NCBI RefSeq assembly: GCF_022045235.1
Contig: NW_027266286.1
Span: 55,676,001-55,740,000 of the forward strand
Length of the DNA stretch: 64,000 nt
Source of the DNA: Haliotis cracherodii
Lineage: Eukaryota
Direction: 5' to 3'
Under the pieces are notes generated by a model. The model did no database searches and had not been told where the DNA came from. It saw only the letters and a list, made by a program, of their open reading frames with translations. How positions within the stretch are numbered: the stretch's first letter is position 1; every line of letters begins with the position of its first letter. The position numbers and the translations under genes are program-made. This document shows, piece after piece, positions 14,803 through 59,685 of this stretch.

Positions 14803-15030
14803 GTATGTATATCACCATGTACCATTTAACATAGGCGAACCTCTTTCAGAACTACACACTTAACACGATGAAAAGTCATTGATTATTATTTCATACATTA
14901 TTTGTCATTATTGAGTTTACGGACCAGTTCATATGGCGTTCTTATTTGTTTGTTTATCGATACATTTAAAATATTACATTATTTTGTCTTAGGGAATAAT
15001 GCAGAAATTGTATATTTCAGTTCAATCAGG

Positions 15031-17500
15031 ATGAAAGGTCTGAGCAGCTGTCTGCCCATGTGTCTGTGTCTTGCTGTCTGTCTGCAGATCATCTGCGGGG
15101 AAGATACCCAGCAAGTTGACACACCTCTGTCCCGACAAAAGAGGTTTGACTTTGACTTTGACAAAATATTAAAGGGTTTGAAGACGGCAGGCACCTTCGT
15201 AAAGACGGCCACCAACCTTCTTGGCCAAGGGAATTCAACGTTTGGAAGATTTATTAATAGGCTCCCCTTCTTGGATCTGCCAGATGCCAAAAGCATTTTA
15301 GGCCGATTTGATGACATGATGAAGAAAGAGGCCATGACGCCAGTTCAGATGGACCTCGCCCACCAGTTGATGGACGCCCTTAATCATACAGTCTCGCTGA
15401 AGGAGCAATTCGAGGAAAGTAGCGGTACGTTATTAACGAGAACACTCACTTTCGTTAGAGCGGACAAATAGAACGTCTATAGGGACATTAAAATGCTGCT
15501 GGGGTGTGGTTCTGGTGTATGGGGGAAGTCATTATGCTGAAGTGGACTGATCGCTAGCCCAGTAGGTATAGCTTGTGCCGAAGTGTCCGGTTCGATTCGA
15601 TAGATACATGCCACTTCCAATGTGGTATTGCTGGCATATTGTTTAAGGCCATACTCACTCAAATACAACTTACGTGGGAGGACATATGATCGGCAACCAT
15701 ATCTCAGTTTAACAGCTTCTCGTCTCATGAATGACAACTAGTATTTATTTTTCTCGCACAATTTACTTTCAAGTACAGTTTAAAGTACATTGAATGCGAC
15801 TGTAAGTTTAAGATAAAATAATTGGTACTTGTCTGGTTTGACTTCATGCAAAACTATTTCTAAGTACAAAGCAATTATGATTTACACACCGAATCAGTAG
15901 TTGAAACCCGGATACTCTCAGAGCAACCGTCTCTGATAGTTGAAGTCTAAAAGGCAATAGGTTCAAGTGAGAAAGAAGCGGATGAGCGAACGCTAACCAC
16001 ATGGCCACATCCCCGACTGACACAAAGACGTTTATTGATGTCACAGGTGATCGCGGATGACCAAGTGCAAAGTTGCGCCCCTTAGATATATATGTAGGGA
16101 TGGTATGGTTATAGTCAGAAACGTAGCTGATATTGTATCCTTAAATTGCTCATGTCATCACCCACTAGGTCGACTCATCCTGTCACGAGTACTTACAAGC
16201 TTCCGTGATAGGTGAAAGGTTGCGGCGAAGGCGTGAACTCACTCAGTTGCTGTAAACCAGGAAGAATACCATTTGTATTGATGGGGCGGTGGGGTAGTCT
16301 AGTGGTTAAAGCGTTTGCTCGTCACGCCGAAGACCCGGGTTCGGTTCTCCACATGGGTACAAATTGTGAAGCCCATTTCTGGGCCCACTTGCACAAAGCG
16401 ATCCTAGCGCTAAGAAGGTCGTAACTCCCATACTTTAACATAGGCTTACGATAGTCTTAGCGCTAAGATCGCTTTGTGCAAGTGGGCCCTGGTGTCATCC
16501 GCCGTGATATTGCTGGAATATTGCTAAAAGCGGCGTAAAGCCACACTCACTCACTCACTTCTGTTGATTACAGAACATTGTTCTTGTACCTCAACATCCT
16601 TGTTCTAGACCATGTCGTATTATTCATTTTCCTGTTCTTGTAAATGCAACTGTTCTTGTTCAGCTCCTGCTCCTGTTCTATTTTGTTCTTGTTAATGTTC
16701 ATTATTGACCTCCTGATTCAAGAGCCTGTTTCCCCGCTGTCTTTCTTGTTTACTTTCACACTGTTCTTGGTCTCTTTCCTACTCTTGTTCCTGACCTTGA
16801 TCTTATTGTTCCTGATTCTGGTGTACCTCCTCTCGCTCTTTTCAAAGTCGTAGGCTACATGCTATTTGTATATATGTGTTTATCGTCTTCAGGTCAGAAA
16901 CAATTCGATTTGGTCAGTCTGGTGGCGGGACTAAGGACTGCCGGCACTGTGACAAAGACCATCACCAACGTCCTCGGCTTCAGAAACTCCGCTTTCGGAA
17001 GGTTCATCAACCAGGTGCCTTTCTTGGACGTACCTGATGCCAAGAACGTCCTTGAACATGTGGAGAACATGATGAAGACAGAAAAGATGTCAGAGGTCAA
17101 GATGGACCACGCCCATCAGCTGATGGAGGCTCTGCAATACTCCATCCAGATGAAGGAACAACTAGGAGAGGGCAGTGGTAAGTTCTCTTTCAACCAGGTG
17201 TAACTTAAATATTGTCCAAGAAGGAGTTAAACCCAACTCTCTCCGTCACTCAGGAGTAATTGATTGGCCTAAAGAGATTATCGAACTTTGTTGTCTATAG
17301 GAGCTTTTGGTTAGAAAGTAGACTTGCAGTCAGAGAGTTTAATTACGCAGCAAGCTTAAAATGAATATCTGCTGATGAGTTTACTATTTGTTTTAAATAA
17401 TTCGTGCATGGGTTTGTTTGTTACAGGTTCGTCAACATTGCTGCAGACATCGACCTTGATGATGTTGCCGGTCATGTGTGCAGTGAAATTTACCATATAA
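15031..17500 (+). CDS. Gene A: predicted GPI-anchored, furin-processed two-domain amphipathic-helix protein (250 aa)
   Basis: Acceptor tttcag ends 15020. Coding exons 15031-15424 (G|gtacgt), 16893-17177 (G|gtaagt), 17427-17500 (ttacag|...TAA); both introns phase 1; 753 nt total. Signal MKGLSSCLPMCLCLAVCLQIICG; pro EDTQQVDTPLSRQKR; domain 1 FDFDFDKILKGLKTAG...KEQFEESS; domain 2 GQKQFDLVSLVAGLRTAG...KEQLGEGS; tail GSSTLLQTSTLMMLPVMCAVKFTI*. AATAAA at 17676. Confidence 0.85.
16283..16559 (+). mobile_element. SINE family 1, interrupted by a MITE
   Basis: Head 16283-16381 and tail 16489-16559. Confidence 0.85.
16382..16488. mobile_element. 107-bp MITE, probably PIF/Harbinger type, nested in a SINE in a gene A intron
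   Basis: ~33-bp TIR GGCCCACTTGCACAAAGCGATCYTAGCGCTAAGA. CTG target duplication at 16379-16381 and 16489-16491 restores the SINE sequence catttCTGgtgtc. Confidence 0.8.
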
Positions 17501-17883
17501 ATGTGTGGACAAGCATGTTGCCAGGGACTAATTGCTCATGATCAAATTCTCTTTGAGTTGCGTCCCCTTATCAGTGCCAGGATCGGCTTGTCGATTCACG
17601 GAAGAGCTCCTATTATTACCCTCGGCACCATATTTTGTAGTAATCGTCTCGGTGTCCACGCTCTGATATAATTGAAATAAAACTATTTCTCAAACGTTGT
17701 ACTTGTTTAATTAACTATATCACAATTGCCACAGGGTGTGCTGGGGGCAGTGTCGACCCCTCACTGTGAGCGCTAGCCCAGTGCCTGGCCTCTGCGTGTG
17801 TACGCTCTCTACTAGTGAATGAGTAGGTGAGTGTTCTTTAACACCCTGGTCAGCAATAGTCCAACTGTACCTTTAAGTAACCA

Positions 17884-17923
<40 letters not shown>

Positions 17924-17929
17924 TGTTTT

Positions 17930-18139
17930 GTACCTTGGGTGCGCCAGAAATCTATGATCTTGGATTCGCCCAACTTGTTTCTAGGTTTGTCAGCACCACA
18001 CCCCTACTCGTGGGTTTTACCGAGGTGGTAAACGCCTGAAACCTGCACAAAGAACACCGGGTTTCCCCCCACATTAAGATGACACATTTAGCGGCGCTGT
18101 AAGGCTGTAAGTGACGTTTAACCTAACTCACTCACTCAC
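17930..18139 (+). mobile_element. SINE family 4 (partial, diverged)
   Basis: Matches the family-4 body and tail. Confidence 0.65.
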
Positions 18140-18155: not shown

Positions 18156-18299
18156 NNNNNNNNNNNNNNNNNNNNNNNNNNNNNNNNNNNNNNNNNNNNN
18201 NNNNNNNNNNNNNNNNNNNNNNNNNNNNNNNNNNNNNNNNNNNNNNNNNNNNNNNNNNNNNNNNNNNNNNNNNNNNNNNNNNNNNNNNNNNNNNNNNNN
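18156..18299. other. Assembly gap
   Basis: Run of N. Confidence 1.
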
Positions 18300-18699: not shown

Positions 18700-20290
18700 T
18701 TCCCTTTATTCAGTGCTTGTAGGCCACGGGCCTTTTTGTACAGACGACATACAATTAAGGTGCAAACAAGTATAAGATATAATACCCTCCTTCCTTTTTT
18801 TAAGAAAAGCAGTTTTTACATAATTGCACATTATACATGTTGGAGTATTTCTGTTCTTACATTGGCATAAAATAAGTACTTTGCTGTATTCATATTGATA
18901 ATAGGGTCATGCGATGACAGTAGTGTATTAAACTTCAGAATATTTGGGAAGATGTAAAATTTAGATTTTATGTAACTTTGCCTAAGATGGCTATAAGCTG
19001 GACAAATTAACAAAAAGTGATATTCATTTTCGATATGGTTTAAGTTACAAACTTTACATTTTCTAAATTCACGAGGGGCGGTCGGGTAGCCTAGTGGTCA
19101 AAGCGTTCGCTCGTCACGCCGAAGACCCGGGTTCGATTCCCGACATGGGTACAATGTGTGAAGCCCATTTCTGGTGTCCCCCGCCGTGATATTGCTGGAA
19201 TATTGCTAAAAGCGGCGTAAAACCAAACTCACTCACTCACTCACTCTAAATTCACGAGGAATGTTATAATGTCGTCCACGTTCAATTTCTAAATTGTGAG
19301 AACTAAGCCGAAAACGAGTCAATGTTGTTCTGAATTTATTTTCTGTAATACTACTCAAATAGTTCTCACATAAAATGGATGTTTTAAACTGTGTATAATA
19401 AGCCATTTGGGGGCCTTCAGATAAATCACTATGCCAAACCTGAGAAAAGTTGTCTTTTAAACGTTGACGTAACATATTTAAAAATACGGTTTTATTACCA
19501 CATGCTTGAAAGAACCAGACATCACCAAATCCTAATCTAAAAATAACAAGTTTTAAGTTTCGTTACCCAATTTACTTGGCCTTGTTCATCGTACAAGCGC
19601 AACATATTGTAACAATTTTTGGGTAAGCGAGATTCCTGCATTTAAAAGAGACAGCCAATATTCGACACATTTCAATTCAGCAAGCCACCGGATAGGGTAT
19701 CTACCACACTCGCCTAACAACCCATTATTTGAAGTTGATAACTTTACATTTAAAAGACGCTTACAGGCATACAACTGAACTTTTTCTAGTGGTTCTTTGT
19801 CACTGAACCCTCAAATTTCAGCCCCGTATAAAAGTATTGGTGTTATCTTTGCATCAAATAATTTGAAGTAAAAGTGAGGCGAGTATGGTTTTAAGGAATG
19901 TATACTAATTAAAAGGATCATGAACACCTTTCTTGCCTGAATTGCAATATTACTTAAAGCTTTCGACCATAGTAATCTATTGCTAAAATACAAACCAAGA
20001 TAACTGTATCCAGTAAATACTTCAACCACATTTCCGTCATGATACCATTTTTCATAACGTGATAAACCTCCCCCATTTTTAAAAACAAGTATTTTTGTTT
20101 TCAATAAATTCACTGACATTTCCCATTTACAACAGTAATCATGCAAGATATTTAACTTCATTTGTAAATTGTTGACAGTATTGCCAAACACAATAAGATC
20201 CTCCGCAAATAGAAATAGGAAAATATGAATACATTCCGGATGTAACTGAACACCAAAACGACAATTTTGTTCCATTTCTATAATCAAGCA
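18700..20290 (-). mobile_element. 5'-truncated decayed LINE of the same RTE-X-like clade
   Basis: LFAEDL (degenerate FADD), KTKILVF, PILLYGAEI, LGECGRYP, RFRLSSHNLEIERGRH, ICPAY; 3' AATAAA near 18705. Interrupted by the SINE at 19075. Confidence 0.85.
19075..19245 (+). mobile_element. SINE family 1, inserted in a LINE
   Basis: Intact copy; TSD tctaaattcacgagg at 19062 and 19245. Confidence 0.9.
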
Positions 20291-21826: not shown

Positions 21827-22315
21827 CTATGTTTGTCCAGGATTTATGTATCATATGGCGGTTATATTTCACGAAAAGGGGTCTAAAATGGATTTGACAT
21901 TTGAAGTTCCCGTGTCAAGGATCGAAAGTTGAAGATTTATTTAGTAACGCTTAGATCACTAAGTAGAACGGCAGAATGTGAAATATCAAAAGCCATTTAT
22001 TCTCCATTCGGGATTTCGTTTGTTTGTTCATTCTTTAAGGTTGATTGATGATTGAACTTAAACCACATCTTCATATCCTTTCCAATTATTAATCGGTATT
22101 CATTATTGATCCACGAAACTGAATTCAACAGTTCAAATATTCTTGTAGGGGAGACAGTTACTCGTTGACCAAATAATCGTTGAACTATATATAATAAAAT
22201 ATGTTGACCATGCTGTACTACATAAATGTACGTTTGTCCATTTGGAAATCGAATTCTAAAATCTAAAACTTTTTACACATTTGATTAAGTTCTACCTGTT
22301 TTTTACTGAGAACTT

Positions 22316-25300
22316 TAGGAAACCCAAAGACTGTAGCATTCATAGCACAGTCTAATGTGAAGATTAGGAAACTGAAGACTGTAGCACTCATAGCACAGCC
22401 TTATGCGAAGATTAGGCAACCCAAAGACTGTAGCATTCATAGCACAGTCTAATGTGAAGATTGGGAAACCCAAAGACTGTAGCATTCATAGCACAGTCTA
22501 ATGTGAAGATTAGGAAACTAAAGACTGTAGCACTCATAGCACAGTCTAATGTGAAGATTAGGAAACTAAAGACTGTAGCACTCATAGCACAGTTTAATGT
22601 GAAGATTAGGAAACTAAAGACTGTAGCACTCATAGCACAGTCTAATGTGAAGATTAGGAAACTAAAGACTGTAGCACTCATAGCACAGTCTAATGTGAAG
22701 ACAAGGGAACTAAAGACTGTAGCACTCATAGCACAGTCTAATGTGAAGATAAGGGAACTAAAGACTGTAGCACTCATAGCACAGTCTAATGTGAAGATTA
22801 GGAAACTGAAGACTGTAGCACTCATAGCACAGTCTAATGTGAAGATTAGGAAACTAAAGACTGTAGCACTCATAGCACAGTCTAATGTGAAGATTAGGAA
22901 ACTAAAGACTGTAGCACTCATAGCACAGTCTAATGTGAAGATTAGGAAACTAAAGACTGTAGCACTCATAGCACAGTTTAATGTGAAGATTAGGAAACTA
23001 AAGACTGTAGCACTCATAGCACAGTCTAATGTGAAGATTGGGAAACCCAAAGACTGTAGCATTCATAGCACAGTCTAATGTGAAGATTAGGAAACTAAAG
23101 ACTGTAGCACTCATAGCACAGTCTAATGTGAAGATTAGGAAACTAAAGACTGTAGCACTCATAGCACAGTTTAATGTGAAGATTAGGAAACTAAAGACTG
23201 TAGCACTCATAGCACAGTCTAATGTGAAGATTAGGAAACTAAAGACTGTAGCACTCATAGCACAGTCTAATGTGAAGACAAGGGAACTAAAGACTGTAGC
23301 ACTCATAGCACAGTCTAATGTGAAGATAAGGGAACTAAAGACTGTAGCACTCATAGCACAGTCTAATGTGAAGATTAGGAAACTGAAGACTGTAGCACTC
23401 ATAGCACAGTCTAATGTGAAGATTAGGAAACTAAAGACTGTAGCACTCATAGCACAGTCTAATGTGAAGATTAGGAAACTAAAGACTGTAGCACTCATAG
23501 CACAGTCTAATGTGAAGATTAGGAAACTAAAGACTGTAGCACTCATAGCACAGTTTAATGTGAAGATTAGGAAACTAAAGACTGTAGCACTCATAGCACA
23601 GTCTAATGTGAAGATTAGGAAACTAAAGACTGTAGCACTCATAGCACAGTCTAATGTGAAGACAAGGGAACTAAAGACTGTAGCACTCATAGCCCAGTCT
23701 AATGTGAAGATAAGGGAACTAAAGACTGTAGCACTCATAGCACAGTCTGATGTGAAGATTAGGAAACCCAAAGACTGTAGCACTCATAGCACAGTCTAAT
23801 GTGAAGATTAGGAAACTGAAGACTGTAGCACTCATAGCACAGTCTAATGTGAAGACAAGGGAACTAAAGACTGTAGCACTCATAGCACAGTCTAATGTGA
23901 AGATAAGGGAACTAAAGACTGTAGCACTCATAGCACAGTCTGATGTGAAGATAAGGGAACTAAAGACTGTAGCACTCATAGCACAGTCTAATGTGAAGAT
24001 AAGGGAACTAAAGACTGTAGCACTCATAGCACAGTCTGATGTGAAGATAAGGGAACTAAAGACTGTAGCACTCATAGCACAGTCTGATGTGAAGATTAGG
24101 AAACTGAAGACTGTAGCACTCATAGCACATTCTGATGTGAAGATTAGGAAACTAAAGACTGTAGCACTCATAGCACAGTCTAATGTGAAGATAAGGGAAC
24201 TAAAGACTGTAGCACTCATAGCACAGTCTAATGTGAAGACAAGGGAACTAAAGACTGTAGCACTCATAGCACAGTCTAATGTGAAGATAAGGGAACTAAA
24301 GACTGTAGCACTCATAGCACAGTCTGATGTGAAGATAAGGGAACTAAAGACTGTAGCACTCATAGCACAGTCTGATGTGAAGATTAGGAAACTGAAGACT
24401 GTAGCACTCATAGCACAGTCTAATGTGAAGATTAGGAAACTAAAGACTGTAGCACTCATAGCCCAGTCTAATGTGAAGATTAGGAAACTGAAGACTGTAG
24501 CACTCATAGCACAGTCGAATGTGAAGATAAGGGAACTAAAGACTGTAGCACTCATAGCACAGTCTAATGTGAAGATTAGGAAACTAAAGACTGTAGCACT
24601 CATAGCACAGTTTAATGTGAAGATTAGGAAACTGAAGACTGTAGCACTCATAGCACAGTTTAATGTGAAGATTAGGAAACTAAAGACTGTAGCACGTCAT
24701 AGCACAGTCTAATGTGAAGATTAGGAAACTAAAGACTGTAGCACTCATAGCACAGTCTAATGCGAAGATTAGGAAACTAAAGACTGTAGCACTCATAGCA
24801 CAGTTTAATGTGAAGATTAGGAAACTAAAGACTGTAGCACTCATAGCACAGTCTAATGCGAAGATTAGGAAACCCAAAGACTGTAGCATTCATAGCACAG
24901 TCTAATGCGAAGATTAGGAAACTGAAGACTGTAGCACTCATAGCACAGTCTAATGTGAAGATTAGGAAACTGAAGACTGTAGCACTCATAGCACAGTCTA
25001 ATGTGAAGATTAGGAAACTGAAGACTGTAGCACTCATAGCACAGTCTAATGTGAAGATTAGGAAACTGAAGACTGTAGCGCTCATAGCACAGTCTAATGT
25101 GAAGATTAGGAAACTGAAAACTGTAGCACTCATAGCACAGTCTAATGTGAAGATTAGGAAACTGAAGACTGTAGCACTCATAGCACAGTCTAATGTGAAG
25201 ATTAGGAAACTGAAGACTGTAGCACTCATAGCACAGTCTAATGTGAAGATAAGGGAACTAAAGACTGTAGCACTCATAGCACAGTCTAATGTGAAGATTA

Positions 25301-26963
25301 GGAAACTGAAGACTGTAGCACTCATAGCACAGTCTAATGTGAAGATTAGGAAACTGAAGACTGTAGCACTCATAGCACAGTCTAATGTGAAGATTAGGAA
25401 ACTGAAGACTGTAGCACTCATAGCACAGTTTAATGTGAATATTAGGAAACTGAAGACTGTAGCACTCATAGCACAGTCTAATGTGAAGATTAGGAAACTG
25501 AAGACTGTAGCACTCATAGCACAGGCTAATGTGAAGATTAGGAAACTGAAGACTGTAGCACCCATAGCACAGTCTAATGTGAAGATTAGGAAACTGAAGA
25601 CTGTAGCACTCATAGCACAGTCTAATGTGAAGATTAGGAAACTGAAGACTGTAGCACTCATAGCACAGTCTAATGTGAAGATTAGGAAACTGAAGACTGT
25701 AGCACTCATAGCACAGTCTAATGTGAAGATTAGGAGACTAAAGACTGTAGCACTCATAGCACAGTCTAATGTGAAGATTAGGAAACTGAAGACTGTAGCA
25801 CTCATAGCACAGTCTAATGTGAAGATTAGGAGACTAAAGACTGTAGCACTCATAGCACAGTCTAATGTGAAGATTAGGAAACTGAAGACTGTAGCACTCA
25901 TAGCACAGTCTAATGTGAAGATTAGGAGACTAAAGACTGTAGCACTCATAGCACAGTCTAATGTGAAGATTAGGAGACTAAAGACTGTAGCACTCATAGC
26001 ACAGTCTAATGTGAAGATTAGGAGACTAAAGACTGTAGCACTCATAGCACAGCCTAATGTGAAGATTAGGAGACTAAAGACTGTAGCACTCATAGCACAG
26101 TCTAATGTGAAGATTAGGAGACTAAAGACTGTAGCACTCATAGCACAGTCTCATGTGAAGATTAGGAAACTGAAGACTGTAGCACTCATAGCACAGTTTA
26201 ATGTGAAGATTAGGAGACTAAAGACTGTAGCACTCATAGCACAGTCTAATGTGAAGATTAGGAAACTGAAGACTGTAGCACTCATAGCACAGCCTAATGT
26301 GAAGATTAGGAGACTAAAGACTGTAGCACTCATAGCACAGTCTAATGTGAAGATTAGGAGACTAAAGACTGTAGCACTCATAGCACAGTCTAATGTGAAG
26401 ATTAGGAGACTAAAGACTGTAGCACTCATAGCACAGTCTAATGTGAAGATTAGGAAACTGAAGACTGTAGCACTCATAGCACAGTCTAATGTGAAGATTA
26501 GGAAACTGAAGACTGTAGCACTCATAGCACAGTCTAATGTGAAGATTAGGAAACTGAAGACTGTAGCACTCATAGCACAGTCTAATGTGAAGATTAGGAA
26601 ACTGAAGACTGTAGCACTCATAGCACAGTCTAATGTGAAGATTAGGAGACTGAAGACTGTAGCACTCATAGCACAGTCTAATGTGAAGATTAGGAGACTG
26701 AAGACTGTAGCACTCATAGCACAGTCTAATGTGAAGATTAGGAGACTAAAGACTGTAGCACTCATAGCACAGTCTAATGTGAAGATTAGGAAACTGAAGA
26801 CTGTAGCACTCATAGCACAGTCTAATGTGAAGATTAGGAAACTGAAGACTGTAGCACTCATAGCACAGTCTAATGTGAAGATTAGGAGACTGAAGACTGT
26901 AGCACTCATAGCACAGTCTAATGTGAAGATTAGGAGACTAAAGACTGTAGCACTCATAGCACA
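22316..26963. repeat. 48-bp minisatellite (~96 units, 4.6 kb)
   Basis: Unit AAGACTGTAGCACTCATAGCACAGTCTAATGTGAAGATTAGGAAACT(A/G). Confidence 0.97.
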
Positions 26964-30083: not shown

Positions 30084-31608
30084 ATGAAAGGTCAGCTGGT
30101 ATGCCTTTATCTGGCAATATTTCTGCATGTCATCATAGCAGATTCCAGGCAATCTGCAGACAAAGCTCTGTCGCGACCGGAAGGATTTGACTTTCGTGCT
30201 CTACTCCGTGGGTTGAAGTCTGCCGGCTCTCTCGTTAAGGCTATCACCAACATACTAGGATTGAGGGAAACGGATTTTGGTACGTTCATCAACGGTTTAC
30301 CCTTCTTGGATCTTCCTGCCAGCCATCATGCGCTTGCCCACTTTGATGACTTGATGAAGAGAGACAGGAACATGACGGTGATTCAGAAGGCCCGTGTTGA
30401 GAAGCTGATGGCGAAGCTGCAATACAGCATGGAGATGAAGACAGAGCTCGGTACTTGCGATAACGGTAAGGCGCTGTTCTTCCTCCTCCATCTCACAATA
30501 AGTGATGTTCATTTAATGCACACACACACACACACACCCTGGTCATTCCCTTACCTACATAATAGCATATCCAGCAATGGAGTAGTGATATTGGATAAAC
30601 AAAAATTGAAATTGATATTATCTAGCCCTCAGCATGTTGTCTTAATCTTAAATAAAAGCGACAAAATCCTTTCCTCATTCATAAGAAATCTCTGCCAAAA
30701 GCCGATTCCGACTGTATTAAGACCATGTGTTTATAAATAACTACACTTCCCGTGAAGATCAGGGGCAAATAGGTCTTCAGCAACCCATGCTTGCCGTAAA
30801 AGGCGGCTATTCTTGTCGTAAGAGGCGACTAACGGGATCGGGTGGTCAGGCTCGCTGACTTGGTTGATGCATGTCATCGATCCCAATGCCTGGATCGATG
30901 CTCCTGTTGTCAATCACTTGATTGTCTGGTCCAGACTCGATTACTTACAGACCGCCGTCATAGAGCTGTAATATTGCTGAGTGCGGCGTTAAACAATAAA
31001 CAAACAAACAAATAACTAACTAAACAAATGGTGATGACAGATGTTCGGGAAAAGGTGAGCGTATCCTGCCCCACCGGTGGCAGCAACCACAAACCCAAAG
31101 ACTAAATGTAAATATCAAGCTCTCAAGAAAAGAGAGAAACATATTTGCAGTAATAGTGTACAATACTTTAAAATAACCTAGGCGCTATACATTTTATAAT
31201 GTGAAATCTCTACATGTTTAATGGGCAGGTGCCCTCTTTACGAAACAAACTGATACATTGAAATTACTAAACTTGATCCTGATCGAACCTTGATCGATGT
31301 GTCCGACCCTGAGATCCTAATATTTACATGATAAATAGAAATTAACTGTGCGTTTTTAATATCAAGCAATATTACTATAAAAGTCATAAAGGCTATATTA
31401 TCATATGAATTGTTATAGTTCCGTTTTTGTTATTTCCTGGAGTTCCGTGTCTAGGTGTATGGGAATAATGCTTAAAGCGGAGTAAAATCATCCCAAACAG
31501 CCACACTTACTGATAATGTTTTGTCATTGGGTTTCAGGGGCCACGGCGTCAACGCTGCCGATGACTAGTCTGATGTTGCCGGTCATCTATGCAGTGGTCT
31601 CCATCTAG
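30084..31608 (+). CDS. Gene B: single-domain paralog of A, predicted GPI-anchored (150 aa)
   Basis: Acceptor tttcag ends 30073. Exons 30084-30465 (G|gtaagg) and 31538-31608 (tttcag|...TAG), phase 1. MKGQLVCLYLAIFLHVIIA-DSRQSADKALSRPEG-FDFRALLRGLKSAG...KTELGTCDN-GATASTLPMTSLMLPVIYAVVSI*. Last exon is clearly homologous to A's (LMLPV). AATAAA at 31747. Confidence 0.85.
30749..31012 (+). mobile_element. SINE-like family 2, in gene B intron
   Basis: Full copy; flanking direct repeat aaataacta. Confidence 0.85.
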
Positions 31609-37409: not shown

Positions 37410-38504
37410 ATGCAGTCCTCCATCGCCCTCCTGTGCCTCGTTGTCCTGGTGTGCGTGCACTCCACCGTGACCGACACCCTGGACACCCAGGACACCCACC
37501 TGTCACGTCATAGACGTGTGAGATCTGTGGGGGACATCGTAGACGGACTGACCACCAACTTCAATAAATATCTGTCATCTGTTTTCGACGTGGACGAGGA
37601 CGACTTCAAGGACATCCTGAAGGCGCTGGGGAAACTGAAGTTGGCGGTACTGAAGGCACTCCTGAATAAATTCTTTGACTTGAAGGACAAACACCACGAT
37701 TTTGGAAGCGCAGAAAATTTCCAGAGAGTTTCCCAAATGATGGAATCCTTGGAGGCAGACATTCAACAGCAGGAAGTAACCAGCGGTGTCACCCAAGACA
37801 CCCAACTGCCCCGCCCTGTGGATGACATCGTGGACGGACTGACCACCAAGTTCAGTAAATATCTGTCATCTGTTTTCGACGTGGACGAGGACGACTTCAA
37901 GGACATCCTGAAGGCGCTGGGGAAACTCAAGTTGGCAGTTCTGAAGGCACTCCTGAATAAATTCTTTGACTTGAAGGACAAGCACCACGATTTTGGAAGC
38001 GCAGAAAATTTCCAGAGAGTTTCCCAGATGATGGAATCCTTGGAGGCAGATATTCAACAGAAGGAGGCAAGCAGCGGTAAGTGTTTTGTACTGTAGTGCG
38101 GCAGTTTTACCGTTATATATTGATTAATTGAATAAATTGAAAAATATTAATTGGATAATACAGACACCAAATATACAATAAAAGCAATGAGCGTTTTGAA
38201 TGTCAACGTCGGTTGAGACAGCTTATTTACAGCAAATATGCATCAATATATCAAATTAATTAACAATCGTTGTAGCCAGTTACCACTATTATTAGGAGAA
38301 TTCACCATAAGATTAACCTGTTTTTTATAATATAAACATTCATGGTAGAAAATATGTTTAACTATGCACATTGTCATCAGATTAACATTATTGACTTGAT
38401 ATATGATGTGTTTTTGTCTTATTTCAGGGGCGCCTACACCTTACGTTACCATGACGTCATTGACAATTCCACTGCTGCCAGTGATAGCTAAAGTTTTAAA
38501 CTGA
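37410..38504 (+). CDS. Gene C: predicted GPI-anchored protein with an internally duplicated helical domain (247 aa)
   Basis: Acceptor ttcag ends 37405. Exons 37410-38076 (G|gtaagt) and 38428-38504 (tttcag|...TGA), phase 1. Signal MQSSIALLCLVVLVCVHS; pro ...DTHLSRHRRVR; two near-identical domains 291 nt apart; tail SSGAPTPYVTMTSLTIPLLPVIAKVLN*. AATAAA at 38545. Confidence 0.87.
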
Positions 38505-39279
38505 TCTGTGAGGAATATGTTATATTGTGTGTTGATGTCAGGGAAATAAAAATTCGTTTTTTAAACATGTCTATGTGTTTTTCTTCTGGTGCTAGAGAAA
38601 TACAAATTTGTGTATTCAATGTACCACGTGAATGAGTTCAGATTAGCTTAAGACAATTTTAAAAAGTTGTTCAGTTATATCACAGCATATCAACTTGATA
38701 TGGGAGGAAATAGAACGATCACATATATGGTGCTGACAAACCTGGAAACGTTATCAGGGTGCATCTGGAATTCGAACCCACGACTATAGTATTCTAGACT
38801 GCCTTGGCGATGCAGTTCTGCACAGTGCATTTTGGCGTTTCAGACGACGGGTCCACCCTGCATGTACACATGATGTTGCAGGGGATTGATAACATAGAGG
38901 AGTATATCACAGCACATCAAACGCTCAACTCAGACACCGTGACACTGTAATTTGACAATAACTGGATATCTGATGTTATATATCGCCAATATTTCACATA
39001 ATGCATATTCATACACATACTGTAAATAATCGAGTGTGGGTTAGATAATCTAGTGATTGATATAGCGAGCATCGTCTACGGTGTACGATGACAAACAACC
39101 AACCAGGACACCGAGCCTGACCTTCCGAAACATTTGGTCGCCAATAACGACCATCCTAAAAGGGATAGATAACCTAGTGATTGATATAGTGAGCAACGTA
39201 TTTGGTGTACGATGACAAACATTTTGTCGCCAATAACGACCATCTTAGGTTACTGGGGGCATATCATTCTATCACATAA

Positions 39280-39879
39280 TTCTTCCACCCCACAAAAGTC
39301 TTTGTTTCCCAAATGAATTGCAGAAGAAATGAGTGAGAGAAGTAGCATCTTGTCACAATTTTCCCCTTCGGCGCTAAACACGCTGTCTTCTATCACCTCT
39401 GAACAGACAGAACCGGCTTCAATCAGTGAAGACGACCCTCTTTCAGTCACGTCGCTGCCAACGACGTCGATCCGAGCCCATTTCGATCTCTGACGACGAT
39501 GTTGCGCTGTCAATAACTGACCTCTGTAAGGTCTGTAAGCCCTTAATAATTGAGCCCCGAGTCGGGCGTCGACTAACCTTATGCCCTAAGGCATTTGTCG
39601 CTGGTGACATCACTGTCAGGAATCGATTCCGGAGATGCAAAGTACGCAAATACTGGTCTTCATTGGGCGTAGTTACCCTGGGTCTTCCTGTTTTGGACCT
39701 GTCTGATGTCTGCCCGGACTGTCTATATCGTTGCATCTGCCCGGACTGTCTATATCGTTGCATCAGGTTAGTTAAAGCAAAACGGGAGCAACCAAAGATC
39801 TAGCACTGAGGGCATGGGTGGCTCCCATCTGTATCATACCCAGGGCCCGCTCATGGTGTTCGGGTGTCAATCGTGGCAT
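39280..39879 (-). pseudogene. Tc1/mariner transposase fragment
   Basis: MPRLTPEHHERALGMIQMG, then SDRSKTGRPRVTTPNEDQYLR..HLRNRF, then HRRQRSKWAR, then VFTD*SRFCLFRGD (degenerate FSDESRF). Frameshifts, stops and a 27-bp internal tandem duplication. Confidence 0.8.
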
Positions 39880-45767: not shown

Positions 45768-47133
45768 ATGCAGTCCTCCATCGCCCTCCTGTGCCTCGTT
45801 GTCCTGGTGTGCGTGCACTCCACCGTGACCGACACCCTGGACACTCAGGACACCCACCTGTCACGTCATAGAGGGGTGAGATCTGTGGGGGACATCGTAG
45901 ACGGACTGACCACCAAGTTCAATAAATATCTGTCATCTGTTTTCGACGTGGACGAGGACGACTTCAAGGACATCCTGAAGGCGCTGGGGAAACTGAAGTT
46001 GGCGGTACTGAAGGCACTCCTGAATAAATTCTTTGACTTGAAGGACAAGCACCACGATTTTGGAAGCGCAGACAATTTCCAGAGAGTTTCCCAGATGATG
46101 GAATCCTTGGAGGCAGACATTCAACAGCAGGAAGTAACCAGCGGTGTCACTCAGGCCACCAAACTGTCACGCCCTGTGGATGGCATCGTGGACGGACTGA
46201 CCACCAAGTTCAGTAAATATCTGTCATCTGTTTTCGACGTGGACGAGGACGACTTCAAGGACATCCTGAAGGCGCTGGGGAAACTGAAGTTGGCGGTACT
46301 GAAGGCACTCCTGAATAAATTCTTTGACTTGAAGGACAAACACCACGATTTTGGAAGTGCAGAAAATTTCCAGCGAGTGTCCCAGATGATGGAAAAGTTG
46401 GAGGCAGATATTCAACAGCAGGAGTCATCCAGCGGTGAGTATTTTGTAGTTCAGTCTAGAAGTATTACCGCTATTAATCGATTCCAAAAAATAGCGATTG
46501 GATAATACAGATACAAACATATTACGAAACCATTTCTATAATTGTTTGCATGTCAAAGTTGTTTGAGACAGCCTATTTCTATACCAGATGACATTAACGG
46601 ATGTTTGTAAGCAAATATGCATCAATATATCAAATTAATAAATAATCGTAGCAAGTAACCACTTATATTAGAAGCCTATAAGATTAACATGAGGTGTTTT
46701 ATGACATGAGTGAGTGAGTGAGTTAATGCTTTACGTCATCACATCGGCAATATTTCAGCCATATCGTGACGAGTTATGACATGAAGATGCATGGTAGAAA
46801 ATAAGCTTTAACTATGCATATTGGTAACAGTATTAACTTGTTCTTTTGTTTGGTTGTTGTGTTTCTTGGTTTGTTGTTGAACGCCGCAATATTCCAGCTG
46901 TATGACGGCGTCTGTAAATAATCGCGCCTGAACCAGACAATCCAGTGATTGACAAGATGAGCATCGATCCACGTCAATCATGGGTTGCTGTTGACCTGAT
47001 TCTTCAAGAGTACACTAATTTGGAATGATATGTGATGTGTTTTTGTCTTATTTCAGGGGCGCCTACACCTTACGTTACCATGACGTCATTGACAATTCCA
47101 CTGCTGCCAGTGATAGCTAAAGTTTTAAACTGA
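45768..47133 (+). CDS. Gene D: close duplicate of gene C (247 aa)
   Basis: Exons 45768-46434 (G|gtgagt) and 47057-47133. About 10 aa differences from C; last coding exon identical to C. AATAAA at 47174. Confidence 0.87.
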
Positions 47134-48368: not shown

Positions 48369-49289
48369 CCCCTCCAAACAAGGGTAGACAGAATGTCGAA
48401 GGGAGCATATCGTCAATGCGATATATTTGCCTCACCAAAATAAGAACTAAATCTTTATAATGCTTTAACAGAAATATTCAGTTTCCGACATAGAATTATA
48501 AACGTTCTTTGGTTATAATACGATACAGGTGCCATACATATAGGTGTTATGAATTTAGAACACGGTTATTGTGTGAGACACGAAATGGCAGACATCAGCC
48601 CCATTGTTGAGTAACAGAGCTACAAAGTTCATATACTGACAGGAAATCTAAAATATCCGTGTGCGACAAACCGTTTTGGTTATATAATTTCCTTATCTAT
48701 CAGGTGCAGGTATGTAATTAAATTGTCGAACTGACCTTTGTCATGTCGGTTTGACCATGTGCGTGGCCGCGTGACGTGACGTACCTTTTGACACACACTG
48801 ACCTGTGGAGATGAAGGTCAATCACTGTATTTCCTTTACTGCATTTACTGCCTCACTAACTCAAGGTTTGACTCTAATAAACATCAGTAGTATCAGGAAT
48901 ATAAAAATGCAATGTTCACAAACACAGCGTTCATATTCATTTCCCAAAACGCACCTCTGTGCTGCATTGAAAGGGTCCTGATAAAAAGCTCGATTTGTCC
49001 TAAACATCAATGCCAATCACAGCAACAGAAGAATATATATTACGTGAACTACAGATTATAACTGTTTAAAAGTATTACTGTTAAAAAGTATTTAAAGAAT
49101 AAAATAATGGAAACAATGAATATGCAATTTAAACTGCCGGGCAAACGAAGTATAGACGTTTAACGTGGATTTGACCAAAAAAAACTTACAAACGTTATCA
49201 AAACGTTCCTAGACTGAAAACAGTCTTCGAAACACTGCAAGTGGAAACGAGTAATGTTTCCTGGCAGTTTATATTGTTTAACATAGTTC

Positions 49290-51845
49290 CTCACACACAC
49301 GCATGCACAATTACTGTGTCATGTACACCTCCTTACACACGCGCATGCACAATTACTGTGACATGTACACCTTCTCACACACGCGCATGCACAATTACTG
49401 TGACATGTACACCTTCTCACACAAACGCATTCACAATTACTGTGACATGTACACCTCCTTACACACGCGCATGCACAATTACTGTGACATGTACACCTCC
49501 TTACACACGCGCATGCACAATTACTGTGTCATGTACACCTTCCTACATACACGCATGCACAATTACAGTGACATGTACACCTCCTAACATACACGCATGC
49601 ACAATTACTGTGACATGTACACCTCCTTACACACGCGCATGCACAATTACTGTGTCATGTACACCTTCCTAAATACACGCATGCACAATTACTGTGTCAT
49701 GTACACCTTCTCACACACACGCATGCACAATTACTGTGACACGTACACCTCCTTACACACGCGCATGCACAATTACTGTGACATGTACACCTCCTTACAC
49801 ACGCGCATGCACAATTACTGTGACATGTACACCTCCTTACACACACGCATGCACAATTACTGTGTCATGTACACCTTCCTACATACACGCATGCACAATT
49901 ACTGTGACATGTACACCTCCTTACATGCACGCATGCACAACTACTGTGACACGTACACCTCCTTACACACGCACATGCACAATTACTGTGACATGTACAC
50001 CTCCTTACACACGCGCATGCACAATTACTGTGACATGTACACCTCCTTACACACGCGCATGCACAATTACTGTGATATGTACACCTTCCTACATACCTGC
50101 ATGCACAATTACTGTGTCATGTACACCTTCCTACATACACGCATGCACAATTACTGTGTCATGTACACCTTCCTACATACACACATGCACAATTACTGTG
50201 ATATGTACACCTTCCTACATACCTGCATGCACAATTACTGTGTCATGTACACCTTCCTACATACACACATGCACAATTACTGTGTCATGTACACCTCCTT
50301 ACATACACACATGCACAATTACTGTGATATGTACACCTTCCTACATACACGCATGCACAATTACTGTGTCATGTACACCTTCCTACATACACACATGCAC
50401 AATTACTGTGATATGTACACCTTCCTACATACACGCATGCACAATAACTGTGTCATGTACACCTCCTTACATACCTGCATGCACAATTACTGTGTCATGT
50501 ACACCTTCTCACATACACGCATGCACAATTACTGTGACACGTACACCTCCTTACACACGCGCATGCACAATTACTGTGTCATGTACACCTTCCTACATAC
50601 ACGCATTCACAGTTACTGTGACATGTTCACCTCCTTACACACGCGCATGCACAATTACTGTGACATGTACACCTTCCTACATACACGCATTCACAGATCC
50701 TGTGACATGTACACCTCCTTACACACGCGCATGCACAATTACTGTGTCATGTACACCTTCCTACATACACGCATGCACAATTACTGTGACACGTACACCT
50801 CCTTACACACGCGCATGCACACTTACTGTGTCCTGTACACCTTCCTTCATACACGCATGCACAATTACTGTGACACGTACACCTCCTTACACACGCGCAT
50901 GCACAATTACTGTGTCATGTACACCTTCCTACATACACGCATTCACAGTTACTGTGACATGTACACCTCCTTACACACGCGCATGCACAATTACTGTGAC
51001 ATGTACACCTTCTTACATACACGCATTCACAGTTACTGTGACATGTACACCTCCTTACACACGCACATGCACACTTGCTGTGACATGTACACCTTCCTAG
51101 ACACGCGCATGCACAATTACTGTGACATGTACACCTCCTTACACACGCGCATGCACAATTACTGTGATATGTAAACCTCCTTACACACGCGCATGCACAC
51201 TTGCTGTGACATGTACACCTCCTTACACACGCACATGCACAATTACTGTGACATGTACACCTTCTCACACACACGCATGCACAATTACTGTGTCATGTAC
51301 ACCTTCTCACACACACGCATGCACAATTACTGTGACATTTACACCTCCTTACACACGCACATGCACAATTACTGTGACATGTACACCTCCTTACACACGC
51401 ACATGCACAATTACTGTGATATGTACACCTCCTTACACACGCGCATGCACAATAACTGTGACATGTACACCTCCTTACACACGCACATGCACAATTACTG
51501 TGACATGTACACCTCCTTACACACGCACATGCACAATTACTGTGACATGAACACCTCCTTACACACGCACATGCACAATTACTGTGACATGTACACCTTC
51601 CTACATACACACATACACAATAACTGTGATATGTACACCTCCTTAAATACACGCATTCACAATAACTGTGTCATGTACACCTTCCTACATACACGCATGC
51701 ACAATTACTGTGTCATGTACACCTTCCTACATACACGCATGCACAATTACTGTGTCAGGTACACCTTCCTACATACACGCATGCACAATTACTGTGTCAG
51801 GTACACCTTCCTACATACACGCATGCACACTTGCTGTGACATGTA
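49290..51845. repeat. 42-bp minisatellite (~60 units)
   Basis: Unit CACACGCGCATGCACAATTACTGTGACATGTACACCTCCTTA and variants. Confidence 0.95.
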
Positions 51846-52851
51846 CTATCATCACTACCTGTTGGTGATGACATTGTGATTAAATGTTGCGTTAAAATGC
51901 AACACCACAGTATTGTAGATATACACCTCAACGGCAATTACATCCAAACCATTAGTTGCCTGGTGAAGTATATATTCAAGAAATAAATGACGAGTGGTTC
52001 CTTCTCCAGGCAGTGTTTTGTTGAACGATAAACAACAGTCGTTTATTTTTTATAAGAAATAATGAGGGGGCGAAGCCTGTATGGTGATCAAATGTACAAA
52101 CTATATATTCAATTATTTACCCTAATTTTAATAATGATATCTCCCTGAATAGAATCCGACCTCTGAAATTCGGACAAGTTTATTTTACGAACAGGTGGGT
52201 TAAATTTGGTATTTCCTTATCATTCTCACAATCCTCACGTCGACTATCTGAATCTTTTCTTTAAAAAAACGATTGTCGGCCACTGCGTTTATTCAAATCT
52301 CCAGAGATGACGTCATGAAAGAATAATGTTTTATCTTGAAATAAACCACTTATATATGAACATAGCTATTACTAAACAATCACACTGTGTATAAGATCCA
52401 GCTGATATTGGCCGATTGCGGTCATTACCCTTGAACCATCTCATGACATCCTGTCCCCATTCTGGTCCTCCCACTATAGCCAGTTCACAAGTAGACTACC
52501 ACCAGCCACTTAGCGTTACAGATACTGAAGATATATTAAGGCAGTCCAGCATTCTATATGTAGCAATAACGCAGATAAAACGTATGAATATTTCGTATGT
52601 TGCGAAGTAGTTACATTAAACACATAATTAATAGTTACAATATGTAGTCATCGATAACAGTAGAGTTACTCGTTTCTGGATGTTAAGTTGGTGTAAAAAG
52701 TACTGCTAACAGTTTCAGTAGCAGAACCATTAGTGATTCTGGCGTCATGTGATTCTGACGTCATGTGATTCTGACGTCATGGTAAGCAATGACGTCTGCA
52801 ATGCATTGTGATGCAATTTCATTGCAGCGATATCTGCAATGTAGATATCGC

Positions 52852-55192: not shown

Positions 55193-56024
55193 ATGCGGTC
55201 TTCCATTATCCTTCTGTGGCTCGTTGTACTGGTCTGTGTGAACACCCAGGACATCCAAGACAGCCAGGACACCCAAAACAGCAAACTGTCACGTTCTAGG
55301 CGGTCTGTGAAGGAGATTGTGGAGGGTCTGAAGACTGGATTTAGCAGACATCTGTCTTCCGTTTTCACTCTGGCAAAGGATAAGTTTAAGGAAGTCCTCT
55401 CCGCTCTGGGAAAACTTAAGCTAGCTGTAGCCAAAGGGATCCTGAAAAAGTTCATTGGCTTGAAAGACAAGCAGCATGATTTCGGAGATGCAGAAAGTGC
55501 CCAGAGAGTGGCCCAAATGATGGAGGTTCTGGAGGATGATATCGAACGACAGGAGAATGGTAAGAGTACTTCAGAAATAAACAAATTAATTTTCGTTCGT
55601 TCGTGCGTCCGTTTGTTCGTTCGCTCTTTATTCATTCATTCATTCATTCATTCATTCATTCATTCATATATTTATTTATCAACTTACTTATTTTGCTTGT
55701 AGACCACTGATTGATAAATCAGTTATTCGAAAGCCATTAAACATCAAACTTTCGGCTCAAGATCTTTTGACATTAATCAGTAGTAATGACATTAATCAAT
55801 GGCATGGATCAATTACACTAAGCAAGGCAAAATATACTGATATATATTACATCGTATAAACATGCGGTATCCCTGAAATATGATTACTTTGAAAAGACCC
55901 GCTACCATACATTGTGAAGTTATAATTGATGAATACATGTTCTGTTTCAGGAGCGTCAGCATCATACGTCACCGTGACGTCCTTGGCGATTCCTCTTCTA
56001 GCAATGGTGACGCTGAGGTTCTAA
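55193..56024 (+). CDS. Gene E: single-domain paralog of C/D, predicted GPI-anchored (146 aa)
   Basis: Acceptor cttcag ends 55188. Exons 55193-55559 (G|gtaaga) and 55951-56024 (tttcag|...TAA). MRSSIILLWLVVLVCVNT-QDIQDSQDTQNSKLSRSRR-SVKEIVEGLKTG...DIERQEN-GASASYVTVTSLAIPLLAMVTLRF*. Candidate AATAAA at 56500. Confidence 0.87.

Positions 56025-56910: not shown

Positions 56911-56913
<3 letters not shown>

Positions 56914-56962
<49 letters not shown>
56914..56962. repeat. (AT)n microsatellite
   Basis: Direct reading. Confidence 0.95.
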
Positions 56963-56965
<3 letters not shown>

Positions 56966-58279
56966 CAGAAGCAATTTAAAGCACATCTGGACGTGCGTAA
57001 TTATACAGCATGATTGAACACATTTAACTGTGTCTTTGGAATATTTTTAGAAGCAAGACATATGCAAAATCAAAAAATATTTTTAAGGGATTCTTTGACG
57101 AAGAACTTGAAATCATACGCGCATTCTGATTGGTTTGTAGTATTTTCGCACATCACATTCATCGATAGGGGGACGAGTCTTGCAGGTTACGGAAAGGGGC
57201 GAGTGGTGACGAATGTAAGGCCACCTAGCCGAAACTACTTTCAAGCTCCAAACATCAAATAAATCAAGCGACAAAATCCTTTCGATATCCAATAGAAATC
57301 TCTGCATTAAGCCGAGTCTAATGCACGATTCCGACTATATCATGAGCACGTGTTTATGAATCACTATAAAATAGTAATGATACCAGGTGCTCGCTAAAAG
57401 GTGAGCGTATCCTGATCACAAACACATGCAAAGACAAGTCAAAATAGGGAATTACAACGGACAACATTTTTGTAACTGATGCGTCACATTTGGAAATGTC
57501 CTCCACCTGTCTACCATAAAAAAGATTGAAAGCTCTACTGAGGTCTTGAGCGTTGCAACCTTGAGACCGATGCCTTCTTTATATTGACAAACGTTCCTAA
57601 TATGATGAGACAAATATTGTAAATGTCAAATATAAGGAATGACAAATAGGCTTGCACAATACATTTTTTATTCTTTATATATGATATTTACCATAAGGAA
57701 AGACACTCAGCAAACAATCTGTATTTATCTTTCAATTTATCCGAAATCCAACAAGATAAAACACGTTTTGTCAAGTAATATTTATTATTTTTTTACAACA
57801 ACAAAAAGTAATGACTAAATTTGCAGTTGCAATGGCTCAATATGTTAAGCCTGTTTTGGTGTCCTCTGTCGGGATATTACAGAAACTGGGATCCCTTTGT
57901 TGAATGGTACTATCAGTATTATCACATTGGCATGGGTATAGCTTATCTTTGAGTGTAGGGAATGAAATGCACTTTCAATGGATCCTGACACAATCAAGGG
58001 ACGTAACTCTGTACGTTGTGGGTGTGTGGGTGGTTTTGTATGTGTTGGTGTGGGTGGTTGTCAGTCTGTCTGGTACATCGCTCTGCTTACTTCCCTCCAT
58101 ATAATTTAAATAAATAAATTACAATAAATAACGTGTAAATCGCTGCAAAACATGTAAATCACTACAAATAACTTATATTTACAGATGATATAAATATGTT
58201 GCTGCTATGTACAAAGGTGTGCCTTGTAAGTATATACGACTGAAGTGTTGTGTCGGTCATATTTCCTCCACATAGACTC

Positions 58280-59334
58280 TTAGAATCCCATCTGGAGAGC
58301 CAACACCACGTGCAGGGCACTGGTGCCAATAAACAGAACAACTGCAGACACGCCTGTGATTTCCTTCGCACCTGCGAACACAAAAGGAAAAATATTTTAT
58401 GTCATAAATATATTAATACTGTGTACCAAATATCTGAAGAAAATAGGGGACGAGGTGCAGTGTTGTGTCACTTAGCATGATCTAATTTTCCGGGTTCGAA
58501 TCCCAGACACGACACAACCATGCAACTCCTGTAATAGCCAGTTCACAAGTAGAATACCACAAGCATCATCGTATTACAGATAATGAAACTATATTTAAGG
58601 CAGTTCATCATTATATATGTACTACTTAATTATTCGTGTAAGAAACCGTTCGCACAAACAATACATTTCTTCCCACCTATTTTGGTTAATACAATTCTAT
58701 TGATTTCTCGGTGTAGCATCTGTTTTGGTCCCATGCTATCAGATTCGACTTTTTTCACGTTTAACATCTTTTCAGGGAGTCATCGATACTTAAAATTGCC
58801 CCTACTCCCTTGACCTTAAAGACGAAAGATTACAAAGGCATCAACTACTAAGACCAAACACCAATGGTCCTTACTAAGATGAATTGAATACACACCTGAT
58901 GCCAGCAACAACAGCTGGTATTCTTGAAACTTTCTTTCCAACTGGGCCTCAGTCATACAATTCGGAGTATTTGACGAACCCTGAAAGATACTGCGGAAGA
59001 ATTCCCCTATGATGGGTACTGCTGCAGCAAATATAGCAGCTCTCTTTTGCCTCCCGCCATCACGTCCTTGCGTCTTCTCCATCATCAAGTTGGAACCTTG
59101 TCTACCTCCCTCTGGGTTCTCTGTCCATCTTGTAGACTTCATCGCGGACCGGATGTCAGAGCTGTGGTGCTCATACACATGCGCAGCATCAGCATCCGGA
59201 AAAGATGAGTGGTTAAATGAGATTTCGGTCTTCACTTGATCCTGTGTCTCATTTCGCTGACCGATTGCTATCATTGCCCGCACCGATTGTGTCGACAGAA
59301 CAGTAAGTGCGAGGACTATTGCCACCATTGCCAT
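58280..59334 (-). CDS. Gene F: secreted precursor with RQKR site, hydrophobic/amphipathic mature N-terminus and GPI-like tail (176 aa)
   Basis: Minus strand. Acceptor ttacag, exon starts 59337, ATG 59334. Exons 59334-58896 (TCAG|gtgtgt) and 58371-58280 (tcgcag|...TAA), phase 1. MAMVAIVLALTVLSTQSVRA-(long pro)-GGRQKR-AAIFAAAVPIIGEFFRSIFQGSSNTPNCMTEAQLERKFQEYQLLLLAS-GAKEITGVSAVVLFIGTSALHVVLALQMGF*. Candidate minus-strand AATAAA at 57786-57781. Confidence 0.8.
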
Positions 59335-59685
59335 TGTCTGTAACAATAAAACATGGAACATTAGCATATTATATTTTAATTTTTAACGCCACAGTCAGCT
59401 AGGTTCCAGCCACATCACACAGGCCTATAAATAGTCTAGTTTTCAGCAGACAAAGATTGATATTGTGTGCCGTCAGGGTACAATGTCATACGATCAACCA
59501 GGGTTAGAAACTAACAGTTTTTGTCCACTAGTCCTTATGATGATAACATTTAGCAAAACTTTTAAAATGGGCCAGTTTCTACTAGTCCTTATGATACCTT
59601 TACTATTGAGCAGTTTCGTTAGGACTACAGAACCATTTAATCGCATCTAACGTCAAGCATACGTTACTAGGGGTCTATTCCAACT

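Follow-up and report, generated by a model that had tools for sequence, protein, structure and literature searches.

The genes described here lie in a stretch of 64,000 nucleotides (nt) of the Haliotis cracherodii genome (contig NW_027266286.1, positions 55,676,001 to 55,740,000), referred to below as the window, in whose positions coordinates are given. Between 15021 and 59367 it holds six small spliced genes, A to F, which an earlier reading of the bare DNA (the sequence-only reading) had presented as one family of surface proteins, each with a signal peptide, a polar pro-piece ending in a basic motif, a helical region essentially without Cys and a short last exon resembling a glycosylphosphatidylinositol (GPI) attachment signal. 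First coding exons were modelled from open reading frames (ORFs) and motif positions, with donors placed by phase, while terminal exons were sought by scanning downstream AG acceptors for a phase-1 continuation with a hydrophobic tail. Six genes of common layout were indeed recovered at the positions proposed for them, as judged from the exon models, identity to RefSeq proteins and, for gene A, transcript contigs. All of A to F are present, but gene A carries an extra domain exon and a 5' untranslated (5'UTR) exon, and the family extends beyond the window.

Genes A to E are on the + strand. Gene A starts with a non-coding 5'UTR exon at 14726-14802, which transcript contigs from three runs join to 15021 with 218 nt skipped (GT..AG); its 5' end may lie further upstream than 14726. 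The second exon (15021-15424, ATG at 15031) encodes the signal peptide, the pro-piece up to LSRQKR and a first helical domain, and ends in phase 1, its joint from 15424 to 16893 being found in four runs. The third exon (16893-17177) is a symmetric phase 1-1 cassette encoding a second helical domain, which starts G-QKQFD and has lost the basic site. The last coding exon (17427-17500, stop codon at 17498-17500) adds 24 residues, made up of GSS, a polar spacer and a hydrophobic end, so that the coding parts of the gene are 15031-15424, 16893-17177 and 17427-17500.

Gene B has a first exon at 30084-30465, encoding a signal peptide, LSRPEG in place of a dibasic site and one helical domain, and a last exon at 31538-31608 with 23 GPI-signal-like residues. 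In gene C, the first exon (37410-38076) comprises the signal peptide, a pro-piece to RHRRVR and two helical domains, and the last exon (38428-38504) 25 GPI-signal-like residues. Gene D is built in the same way from exons at 45768-46434 (RHRGVR, two domains) and 47057-47133, the 25 residues of the latter being identical to those of gene C; with 95% protein identity, D is a recent duplicate of C. Gene E combines a signal peptide, LSRSRR and one helical domain of the C/D type (55193-55559) with a GPI-signal-like last exon of 24 residues (55951-56024), and an equivalent tail is found in the H. rubra protein P0004. Gene F is on the - strand, with a first coding exon at 58896-59367 (signal peptide, polar pro-region of about 80 residues, RQKR and a conserved hydrophobic/helical mature part of about 48 residues) and a last exon at 58280-58371, whose 30 residues finish in a hydrophobic end of 23 residues. 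Both exons of B, C and D are contained in RefSeq entries, the spliced forms being identical to P0003 (XP_071114338), P0002 (XP_071114499) and P0009 (XP_071113904), respectively, and spliced gene F is identical to P0015. These four H. cracherodii entries are titled "uncharacterized protein", and the genes are thus already annotated in RefSeq with no function attached.

The shared design described by the sequence-only reading is borne out in several respects. The last intron of every gene is a phase-1 GT..AG intron that splits a Gly codon, and it is followed in all six by a last exon of 23-30 residues with small residues first and a hydrophobic end. By inspection, a hydrophobic N-terminus of 17-23 residues serves as putative signal peptide in each gene. 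The mature parts contain no Cys in A, C, D and E and a single one each in B and F, in agreement with a region essentially free of this residue.

Gene A is transcribed and spliced. In 22 public runs from 10 studies, carrying six organism labels, 0.24-0.35 of the sampled words of 14900-17700 were recovered; exons make up 0.34 of this stretch. Transcript contigs were examined over the region of this gene (14500-18100) in four runs from four studies. One contig of 1005 nt (X2, record 14) spans 14753-14801, 15020-15423, 16892-17176 and 17426-17692, and hence all four exons; in the gene model its joints were shifted by +1 for GT..AG. The three joints skip 218, 1468 and 249 nt, all GT..AG, each was seen in three or four runs, and the word depth of intronic contigs was approximately 100-fold lower. 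The four-exon contig and the recurring joints demonstrate that gene A is one gene of four exons (5'UTR, domain 1, domain 2 and tail), with a transcript reaching at least 17692, and the splicing proposed from the sequence was therefore recovered by RNA sequencing. Its frame runs through 250 codons and a stop, with four conservative differences from the H. rufescens protein P0013. The ORF at 16859-17203, although it looked like a separate one, is the second domain exon of gene A. Short interspersed repeats at 16194-16556 (in intron 2) and at 17888-18008 reached a summed contig depth of up to about 378,000 and were present in all four RNA runs, with dozens of differing joints and loose ends; they are an abundant transcribed repeat family outside the gene A mRNA.

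Homology searches were run exon by exon, and the spliced forms were compared with the proteins returned. The eight domain copies of A to E align colinearly, with the LSR-basic motif in one column and several invariant positions, among them one F, one M, three L and the G-L in helix 1. The A/B-type and C/D/E-type domains share only about 25% identity (BLASTP E 0.001), but a profile made from two paralogs upstream of the window retrieves three members of the latter type (E, C and D) with E-values of 1e-9 to 1e-10, and this independent result confirms the relation between the two types. The two paralogs are more divergent members located 49 kb and 39 kb upstream of the window. The first, P0012 (XP_071113974, gene 'H'; C23:55626713-55628768), has the site RRLVKR and a tail consisting of NGSTRVYQSS and 16 hydrophobic residues. 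The second (C23:55636609, within 55636606-55636965) is absent from protein listings and has the site KVVKR; its terminal exon was not found in the genomic stretch examined there. No further paralogs were detected in the 1.18-Gb genome outside C23:55.627-55.735 Mb, and the family comprises seven genes with ten domain copies within about 110 kb.

When 1.84 billion representative proteins were scanned with HMMER, eight matched, five of which were from Haliotis (H. cracherodii, H. rufescens and H. rubra) and one of which, P0005, is encoded on a 685-nt NCBI contig. The other two matches, P0006, an mTERF-like repeat protein, and P0007 (XP_049789177, Schistocerca nitens; E-value 2e-5), were weak and were judged spurious or convergent, with convergence the probable explanation for P0007. 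The locust protein contains five repeats of a unit similar to helix 1 of the C/D/E domain (VGDLVDGLSTAVG...), with GKR/KR sites bordering every repeat, and has the true design of a polyprotein that is cut apart, which the abalone genes do not. A second, alignment-seeded search added further Haliotis entries only, and in the libraries searched the family is restricted to Haliotis. None of the seven exon translations matched a Pfam family above cut-off, NCBIfam gave no match, and a word-indexed protein search with the gene A exon likewise returned nothing, the family surfacing only in the full hidden Markov model scan. The view of a lineage-specific family without a characterised relative consequently stands for these searches (Pfam, NCBIfam, profiles of PDB sequences and HMMER), apart from P0005 and the two weak hits.

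Membership of the family does not extend to gene F. Its proposed homology to A-E was rejected (BLASTP E 26 and 0.94, hhalign probability 0.1%), and the six-gene family reduces to five related genes in the window, A to E, and one that is unrelated in sequence and similar in layout only. Gene F is single-copy in the genome, and its RefSeq model begins with the second Met (59334). The identity of F between H. cracherodii and H. rubra is 59%, with 73% in the mature part and 52% in the pro-region, and the basic site is RQKR in the former species and RPKR in the latter. The sequence following RQKR in the mature part (58896-59055, - strand) is rich in Ala, Ile, Phe and Gly and near-invariant in three Haliotis species, while the pro-region of about 80 residues diverges among them. 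Gene F thus encodes a small conserved peptide in its own right, which ends in a putative anchor or membrane tail; its 23-residue hydrophobic end could be either a GPI signal or a C-terminal membrane helix.

The basic motifs listed by the sequence-only reading (RQKR in A, RHRRVR in C, RHRGVR in D, RSRR in E and RQKR in F) are all in place, but gene B, with LSRPEG, has none. A full furin consensus is found in A (RQKR), C (RHRR/RRVR), E (RSRR), F (RQKR) and P0005 (RQKR), only the minimal RxxR motif in D (RGVR), and KR only in the two upstream paralogs (LVKR and VVKR), whereas gene B, the H. rubra E-like protein P0004 (SHPEH) and all internal domain junctions are without a basic site. The motif occupies one alignment column in A, C, D, E, the two upstream paralogs and P0005, and in the AlphaFold model of gene A the site region has a predicted local distance difference test (pLDDT) score below 50. 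Convertase cleavage of most members is accordingly plausible from the motifs, but the lack of a site in B and P0004 means that cleavage is no universal activation switch and not essential to the family. Ordinary secreted proteins of high abundance, proalbumin and proapoA-II among them, can carry short basic pro-pieces as well, and the motif alone is therefore no sign of an armed effector.

The number of domains varies within both types. Two A-type domains are present in gene A and in P0013 of H. rufescens and three in P0001 of H. rubra, and C-type proteins have either two (P0002, P0009 and P0010) or three (P0011). The copies in gene A are separate cassette exons, while those in C and D stem from a 291-nt tandem duplication within the exon. 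The unit copied by either route started inside the pro-piece, and no basic motif survives at the resulting junction: RQKR-FD became QKQ-FD or EKQ-SD in the A type, and TQDTHLSRHRRVRSVGD became TQDTQLPRPVDD or TQATKLSRPVDG (LPRP/LSRP) in the C/D type. Since the internal junctions have no basic site, these are multi-domain proteins rather than polyproteins cut into peptides. The sequences replacing the lost motif are LSRPEG in B (30168-30185), LSRPVDG in the linker ahead of the second domain of D (46143-46180) and LPRPVDD at the second domain of C, LSRP occurring twice. As Pro directly after Arg would disfavour convertase cleavage, the loss may have been selected rather than accidental. The locus neatly illustrates how modules can multiply in two ways within one family, by duplication of a phase 1-1 cassette exon and by in-exon tandem duplication, with the processing site lost in both.

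AlphaFold2 predicted a compact bundle of five helices in two subfamilies, represented by domain 1 of gene A (alignment of 8 rows; mean pLDDT 74, predicted template modelling score 0.63) and by P0008, a distant paralog, for which an alignment of 9 rows gave a pLDDT of 64-85 within the domain and low confidence for signal peptide, pro-piece and tail. Foldseek found no match in the PDB at E<=0.001, the best hit of an exhaustive VIA search (Z 7.7) was rated generic for helical bundles, and a profile search of all PDB sequences returned nothing below E 0.1. The abalone acrosomal proteins lysin and sp18, whose structures have been solved, were absent from the PDB profile listing (E<=10) and from the top lists of Foldseek and the VIA-wide search. 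The suggested fold check thus yielded no specific match to a known structure. The mature units are 84-97 residues long with net charges of -6 to +2, and local segments within them are cationic and amphipathic, with hydrophobic moments (muH) of up to 0.66. A packed five-helix bundle, if correctly predicted, would explain the amphipathic helices without membrane activity.

Comparison of C with D gave proportions of synonymous (pS) and non-synonymous (pN) differences of 0.099 and 0.026 (ratio 0.26), and comparison of the two domains of C gave 0.157 and 0.025 (ratio 0.16); the C/D protein is accordingly under purifying selection. Between species, the P0012 domain is 81% identical in H. cracherodii and H. 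rubra, and P0013, which is 98% identical to gene A, matches H. rubra at 45/48 positions in the first half of domain 1 and at 33/45 in the second half.

The C-terminal tails were judged by hand rules for a GPI signal, namely small residues at omega and omega+2, a polar spacer of 5-10 residues, a hydrophobic end of 10-20 residues and nothing hydrophilic behind it. All six tails conform, and the omega candidates SGS, NGA, SGA, GAS and ASG fall on the exon junction, so that processing there would remove the 19-31 residues up to the C-terminus. The last 15 residues have a mean Kyte-Doolittle value of 1.3-2.0 and 0-1 charged residue in all six genes, and the hydrophobic stretch measures 13-23 residues with nothing after it. 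In A to E it is only 13-16 residues long and contains Pro, which argues against a membrane helix. Moreover, the tail exon is homologous throughout the A-E family, including the distant P0012 (TSL-x-IPLL-type). The proposed tether therefore agrees with the tail anatomy of every gene, with the reservation that the tail of F could be a membrane helix, and GPI anchoring can reasonably be inferred from these features.

Taken together, A to E and their paralogs are probably, though by no means certainly, a Haliotis-restricted family of GPI-tethered surface proteins in which a five-helix, Cys-free module of about 90 residues occurs one to three times. The signal peptide would direct the protein into the endoplasmic reticulum, and a GPI anchor would replace the last 19-27 residues, provided by the dedicated terminal exon, at the group of Ser, Gly and Asn residues straddling the phase-1 junction. 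In most members, a furin-type convertase would then remove the polar N-terminal pro-piece of 10-20 residues late in the secretory pathway. The product would be a string of folded helical bundles on the outer leaflet, acting as a coat or binding module, and not a released lytic peptide; gene F is a separate single-copy gene with the same design of signal, pro-region, RxKR and tail.

Several observations weigh against this reading. The read-based evidence of expression covers gene A, the basic site is missing in B and P0004, and the GPI signal is recognised by hand rules. The AlphaFold confidence is only moderate, with shallow alignments of 8-9 sequences. Finally, 6 of the 8 listed exon differences between runs in gene A are non-synonymous, though conservative, so that gene A, unlike C/D, may evolve fast; with so small a sample this indicates looser constraint at most.

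As an architecture, the predicted design is of a known kind, into which the family brings a new protein module. Glypicans, T-cadherin, repulsive guidance molecules (RGMs) and the matrix metalloproteinases MT4/MT6-MMP are convertase-processed GPI-anchored surface proteins, which likewise have a signal peptide, a site of the RxK/RR type, a C-terminal GPI signal and a position on the outer leaflet. In contrast to the abalone family, with its one to three Cys-free bundles of about 90 residues and a pro-piece of merely 10-20 residues, the proteins named are large, rich in Cys and composed of known domains, and no sequence or fold relation to them exists.

An unlikely but not negligible alternative is that the proteins are soluble helical-bundle carriers secreted into haemolymph or mucus, for instance apolipoprotein-like binders of lipids or other hydrophobic ligands. 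The hydrophobic C-terminus would in that case not be a GPI signal but a pro-piece that is cut off, a membrane helix or a tail that binds lipid. Exchangeable apolipoproteins of the apoLp-III and apoA-I type are also Cys-free amphipathic bundles with tandem helical units and, in some cases, a short pro-piece, and abundant secreted helical proteins such as proapoA-II and proalbumin have short basic ones; the assembly of gene A contigs in each of the four runs would equally suit a carrier. The resemblance is one of general design, however, as no sequence or fold match to apolipoproteins was obtained in the Pfam, fold and PDB profile searches. Apolipoproteins are soluble lipid carriers with no C-terminal hydrophobic signal, whereas the tail of every paralog, even of the distant ones, leads from small residues through a spacer to a hydrophobic end that no charged residue follows, and it is kept as an exon of its own across the family.

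The sequence-only reading had itself favoured membrane-active proteins displayed on the surface and switched on by removal of the propeptide. As effectors for defence or fusion, they would thereby unmask amphipathic helices that disturb the target membranes of microbes or gametes. The order of signal, polar pro-piece, dibasic site and amphipathic helices, with local cationic segments of high hydrophobic moment, is that of linear antimicrobial peptide (AMP) precursors such as bombinin (PF05298) and the molluscan myticalins (PMC5577615), which are also Cys-free, helical and organised in tandem multigene families. Bombinin was in addition the nearest language-model cluster to gene A in the ESM Atlas (0.80, 144/256 features), a value within the chance range; gene C had no usable match there. 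In gene F, the N-terminus exposed by cleavage is Ala/Gly/Phe-rich like a fusion peptide and, as noted, better conserved than the pro-region. Nonetheless, linear cationic AMPs comprise about 12-50 residues, are net positive and are released in soluble form, which does not describe the mature units found here. The abalone units are neutral to acidic over their whole 84-97 residues, are predicted to fold as a bundle and to be anchored, and have no internal cleavage sites from which cationic segments could be freed, and the basic site is lost altogether in B and P0004. An anchor would furthermore hold the protein on the membrane of the producing cell, and no similarity to an AMP family was found in Pfam or NCBIfam. 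A linear antimicrobial or cytolytic effector activated by propeptide removal was therefore not upheld, and the broader effector explanation seems distinctly improbable.

A variant, to which we give about as little credence, holds that the modules are latent, GPI-held membrane-inserting or fusogenic bundles on abalone cells or gametes, armed by convertase trimming. On this doubtful supposition, arming would free a strongly conserved N-terminus, FDFDFDKIL... in A, SVGDIVDGL... in C-E and AAIFAAAVPIIGEFF... in F, and molluscs would possess tethered effectors of a new class, acting in pore formation or fusion.

Least probable of all is that the proteins belong to the gamete surface or to reproduction, as part of the fast-evolving fertilisation system of abalones, a role that would be compatible with a GPI anchor and fits the genus restriction, the Cys-free helical nature, the variation in copy and domain number between species and the moderate divergence from H. 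rubra (81% in the H domain, 59% in F), since neither profile nor fold searches revealed similarity to lysin or sp18, the pN/pS values of C/D indicate purifying and not positive selection, and, as a weaker point, a gene active in the gonad alone would not normally yield transcripts in 22 runs from 10 studies. Lysin and sp18, the latter of which is membrane-active, do share with the family the restriction to abalones, the absence of Cys, about five helices and amphipathicity, but they are strongly cationic, soluble, unanchored and under positive selection, while the proteins described here have a charge of about zero or below, a GPI-type tail and pN/pS ratios of 0.16-0.26.

If the GPI-tethered reading is correct, abalones hold a private, well-expressed family of lipid-anchored surface proteins based on a helical module with no relatives in annotated families or solved folds. 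Surface proteins with so narrow a distribution could serve species-specific functions, for example in epithelial or mucosal coats, in settlement, or in host-microbe or gamete contact, which is of relevance because abalone are aquaculture animals and the black abalone is endangered and has been hit by withering syndrome. The practical value is modest and lies in a corrected gene map and a testable hypothesis, not in a demonstrated effector system or an unusual mechanism. The description of the system as undescribed holds in so far as neither a function nor a paper was found, but not with regard to the genes, which RefSeq already lists as uncharacterized proteins. Full-text literature searches, including searches by LOC and XP identifiers, returned no publication on this family, and inspection of a paper on the H. 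laevigata shell proteome likewise revealed nothing on it.

The surrounding DNA has about 40% G+C and contains many fragments of long interspersed nuclear elements (LINEs) and minisatellites. The only assembly gap of the window, a run of N at 18156-18299, lies in intergenic or repeat DNA and in no exon. It starts 656 nt past the gene A stop and about 460 nt past the end of the longest transcript contig (17692), and the next gene begins at 30084; being located beyond the stop and 3'UTR of A and before gene B, it affects no coding exon. A tRNA scan and a scan for large direct repeats gave nothing bearing on the gene cluster. Four large minisatellite arrays occupy 22315-26963, 49288-51846, 1531-3362 and 4116-5852; the repeat units are 48 nt in 97 copies (96% matches), 42 nt in 61 copies, 36/38 nt in about 48 copies and 34 nt in 51 copies, and the arrays produce long spurious ORFs on both strands. 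Between the genes, fragments of LINE reverse transcriptase/endonuclease and of Tc1/mariner-like transposase are found at 6616-10308 (-), 19233-20287 (-) and 39250-39803, all of them broken into short ORFs.

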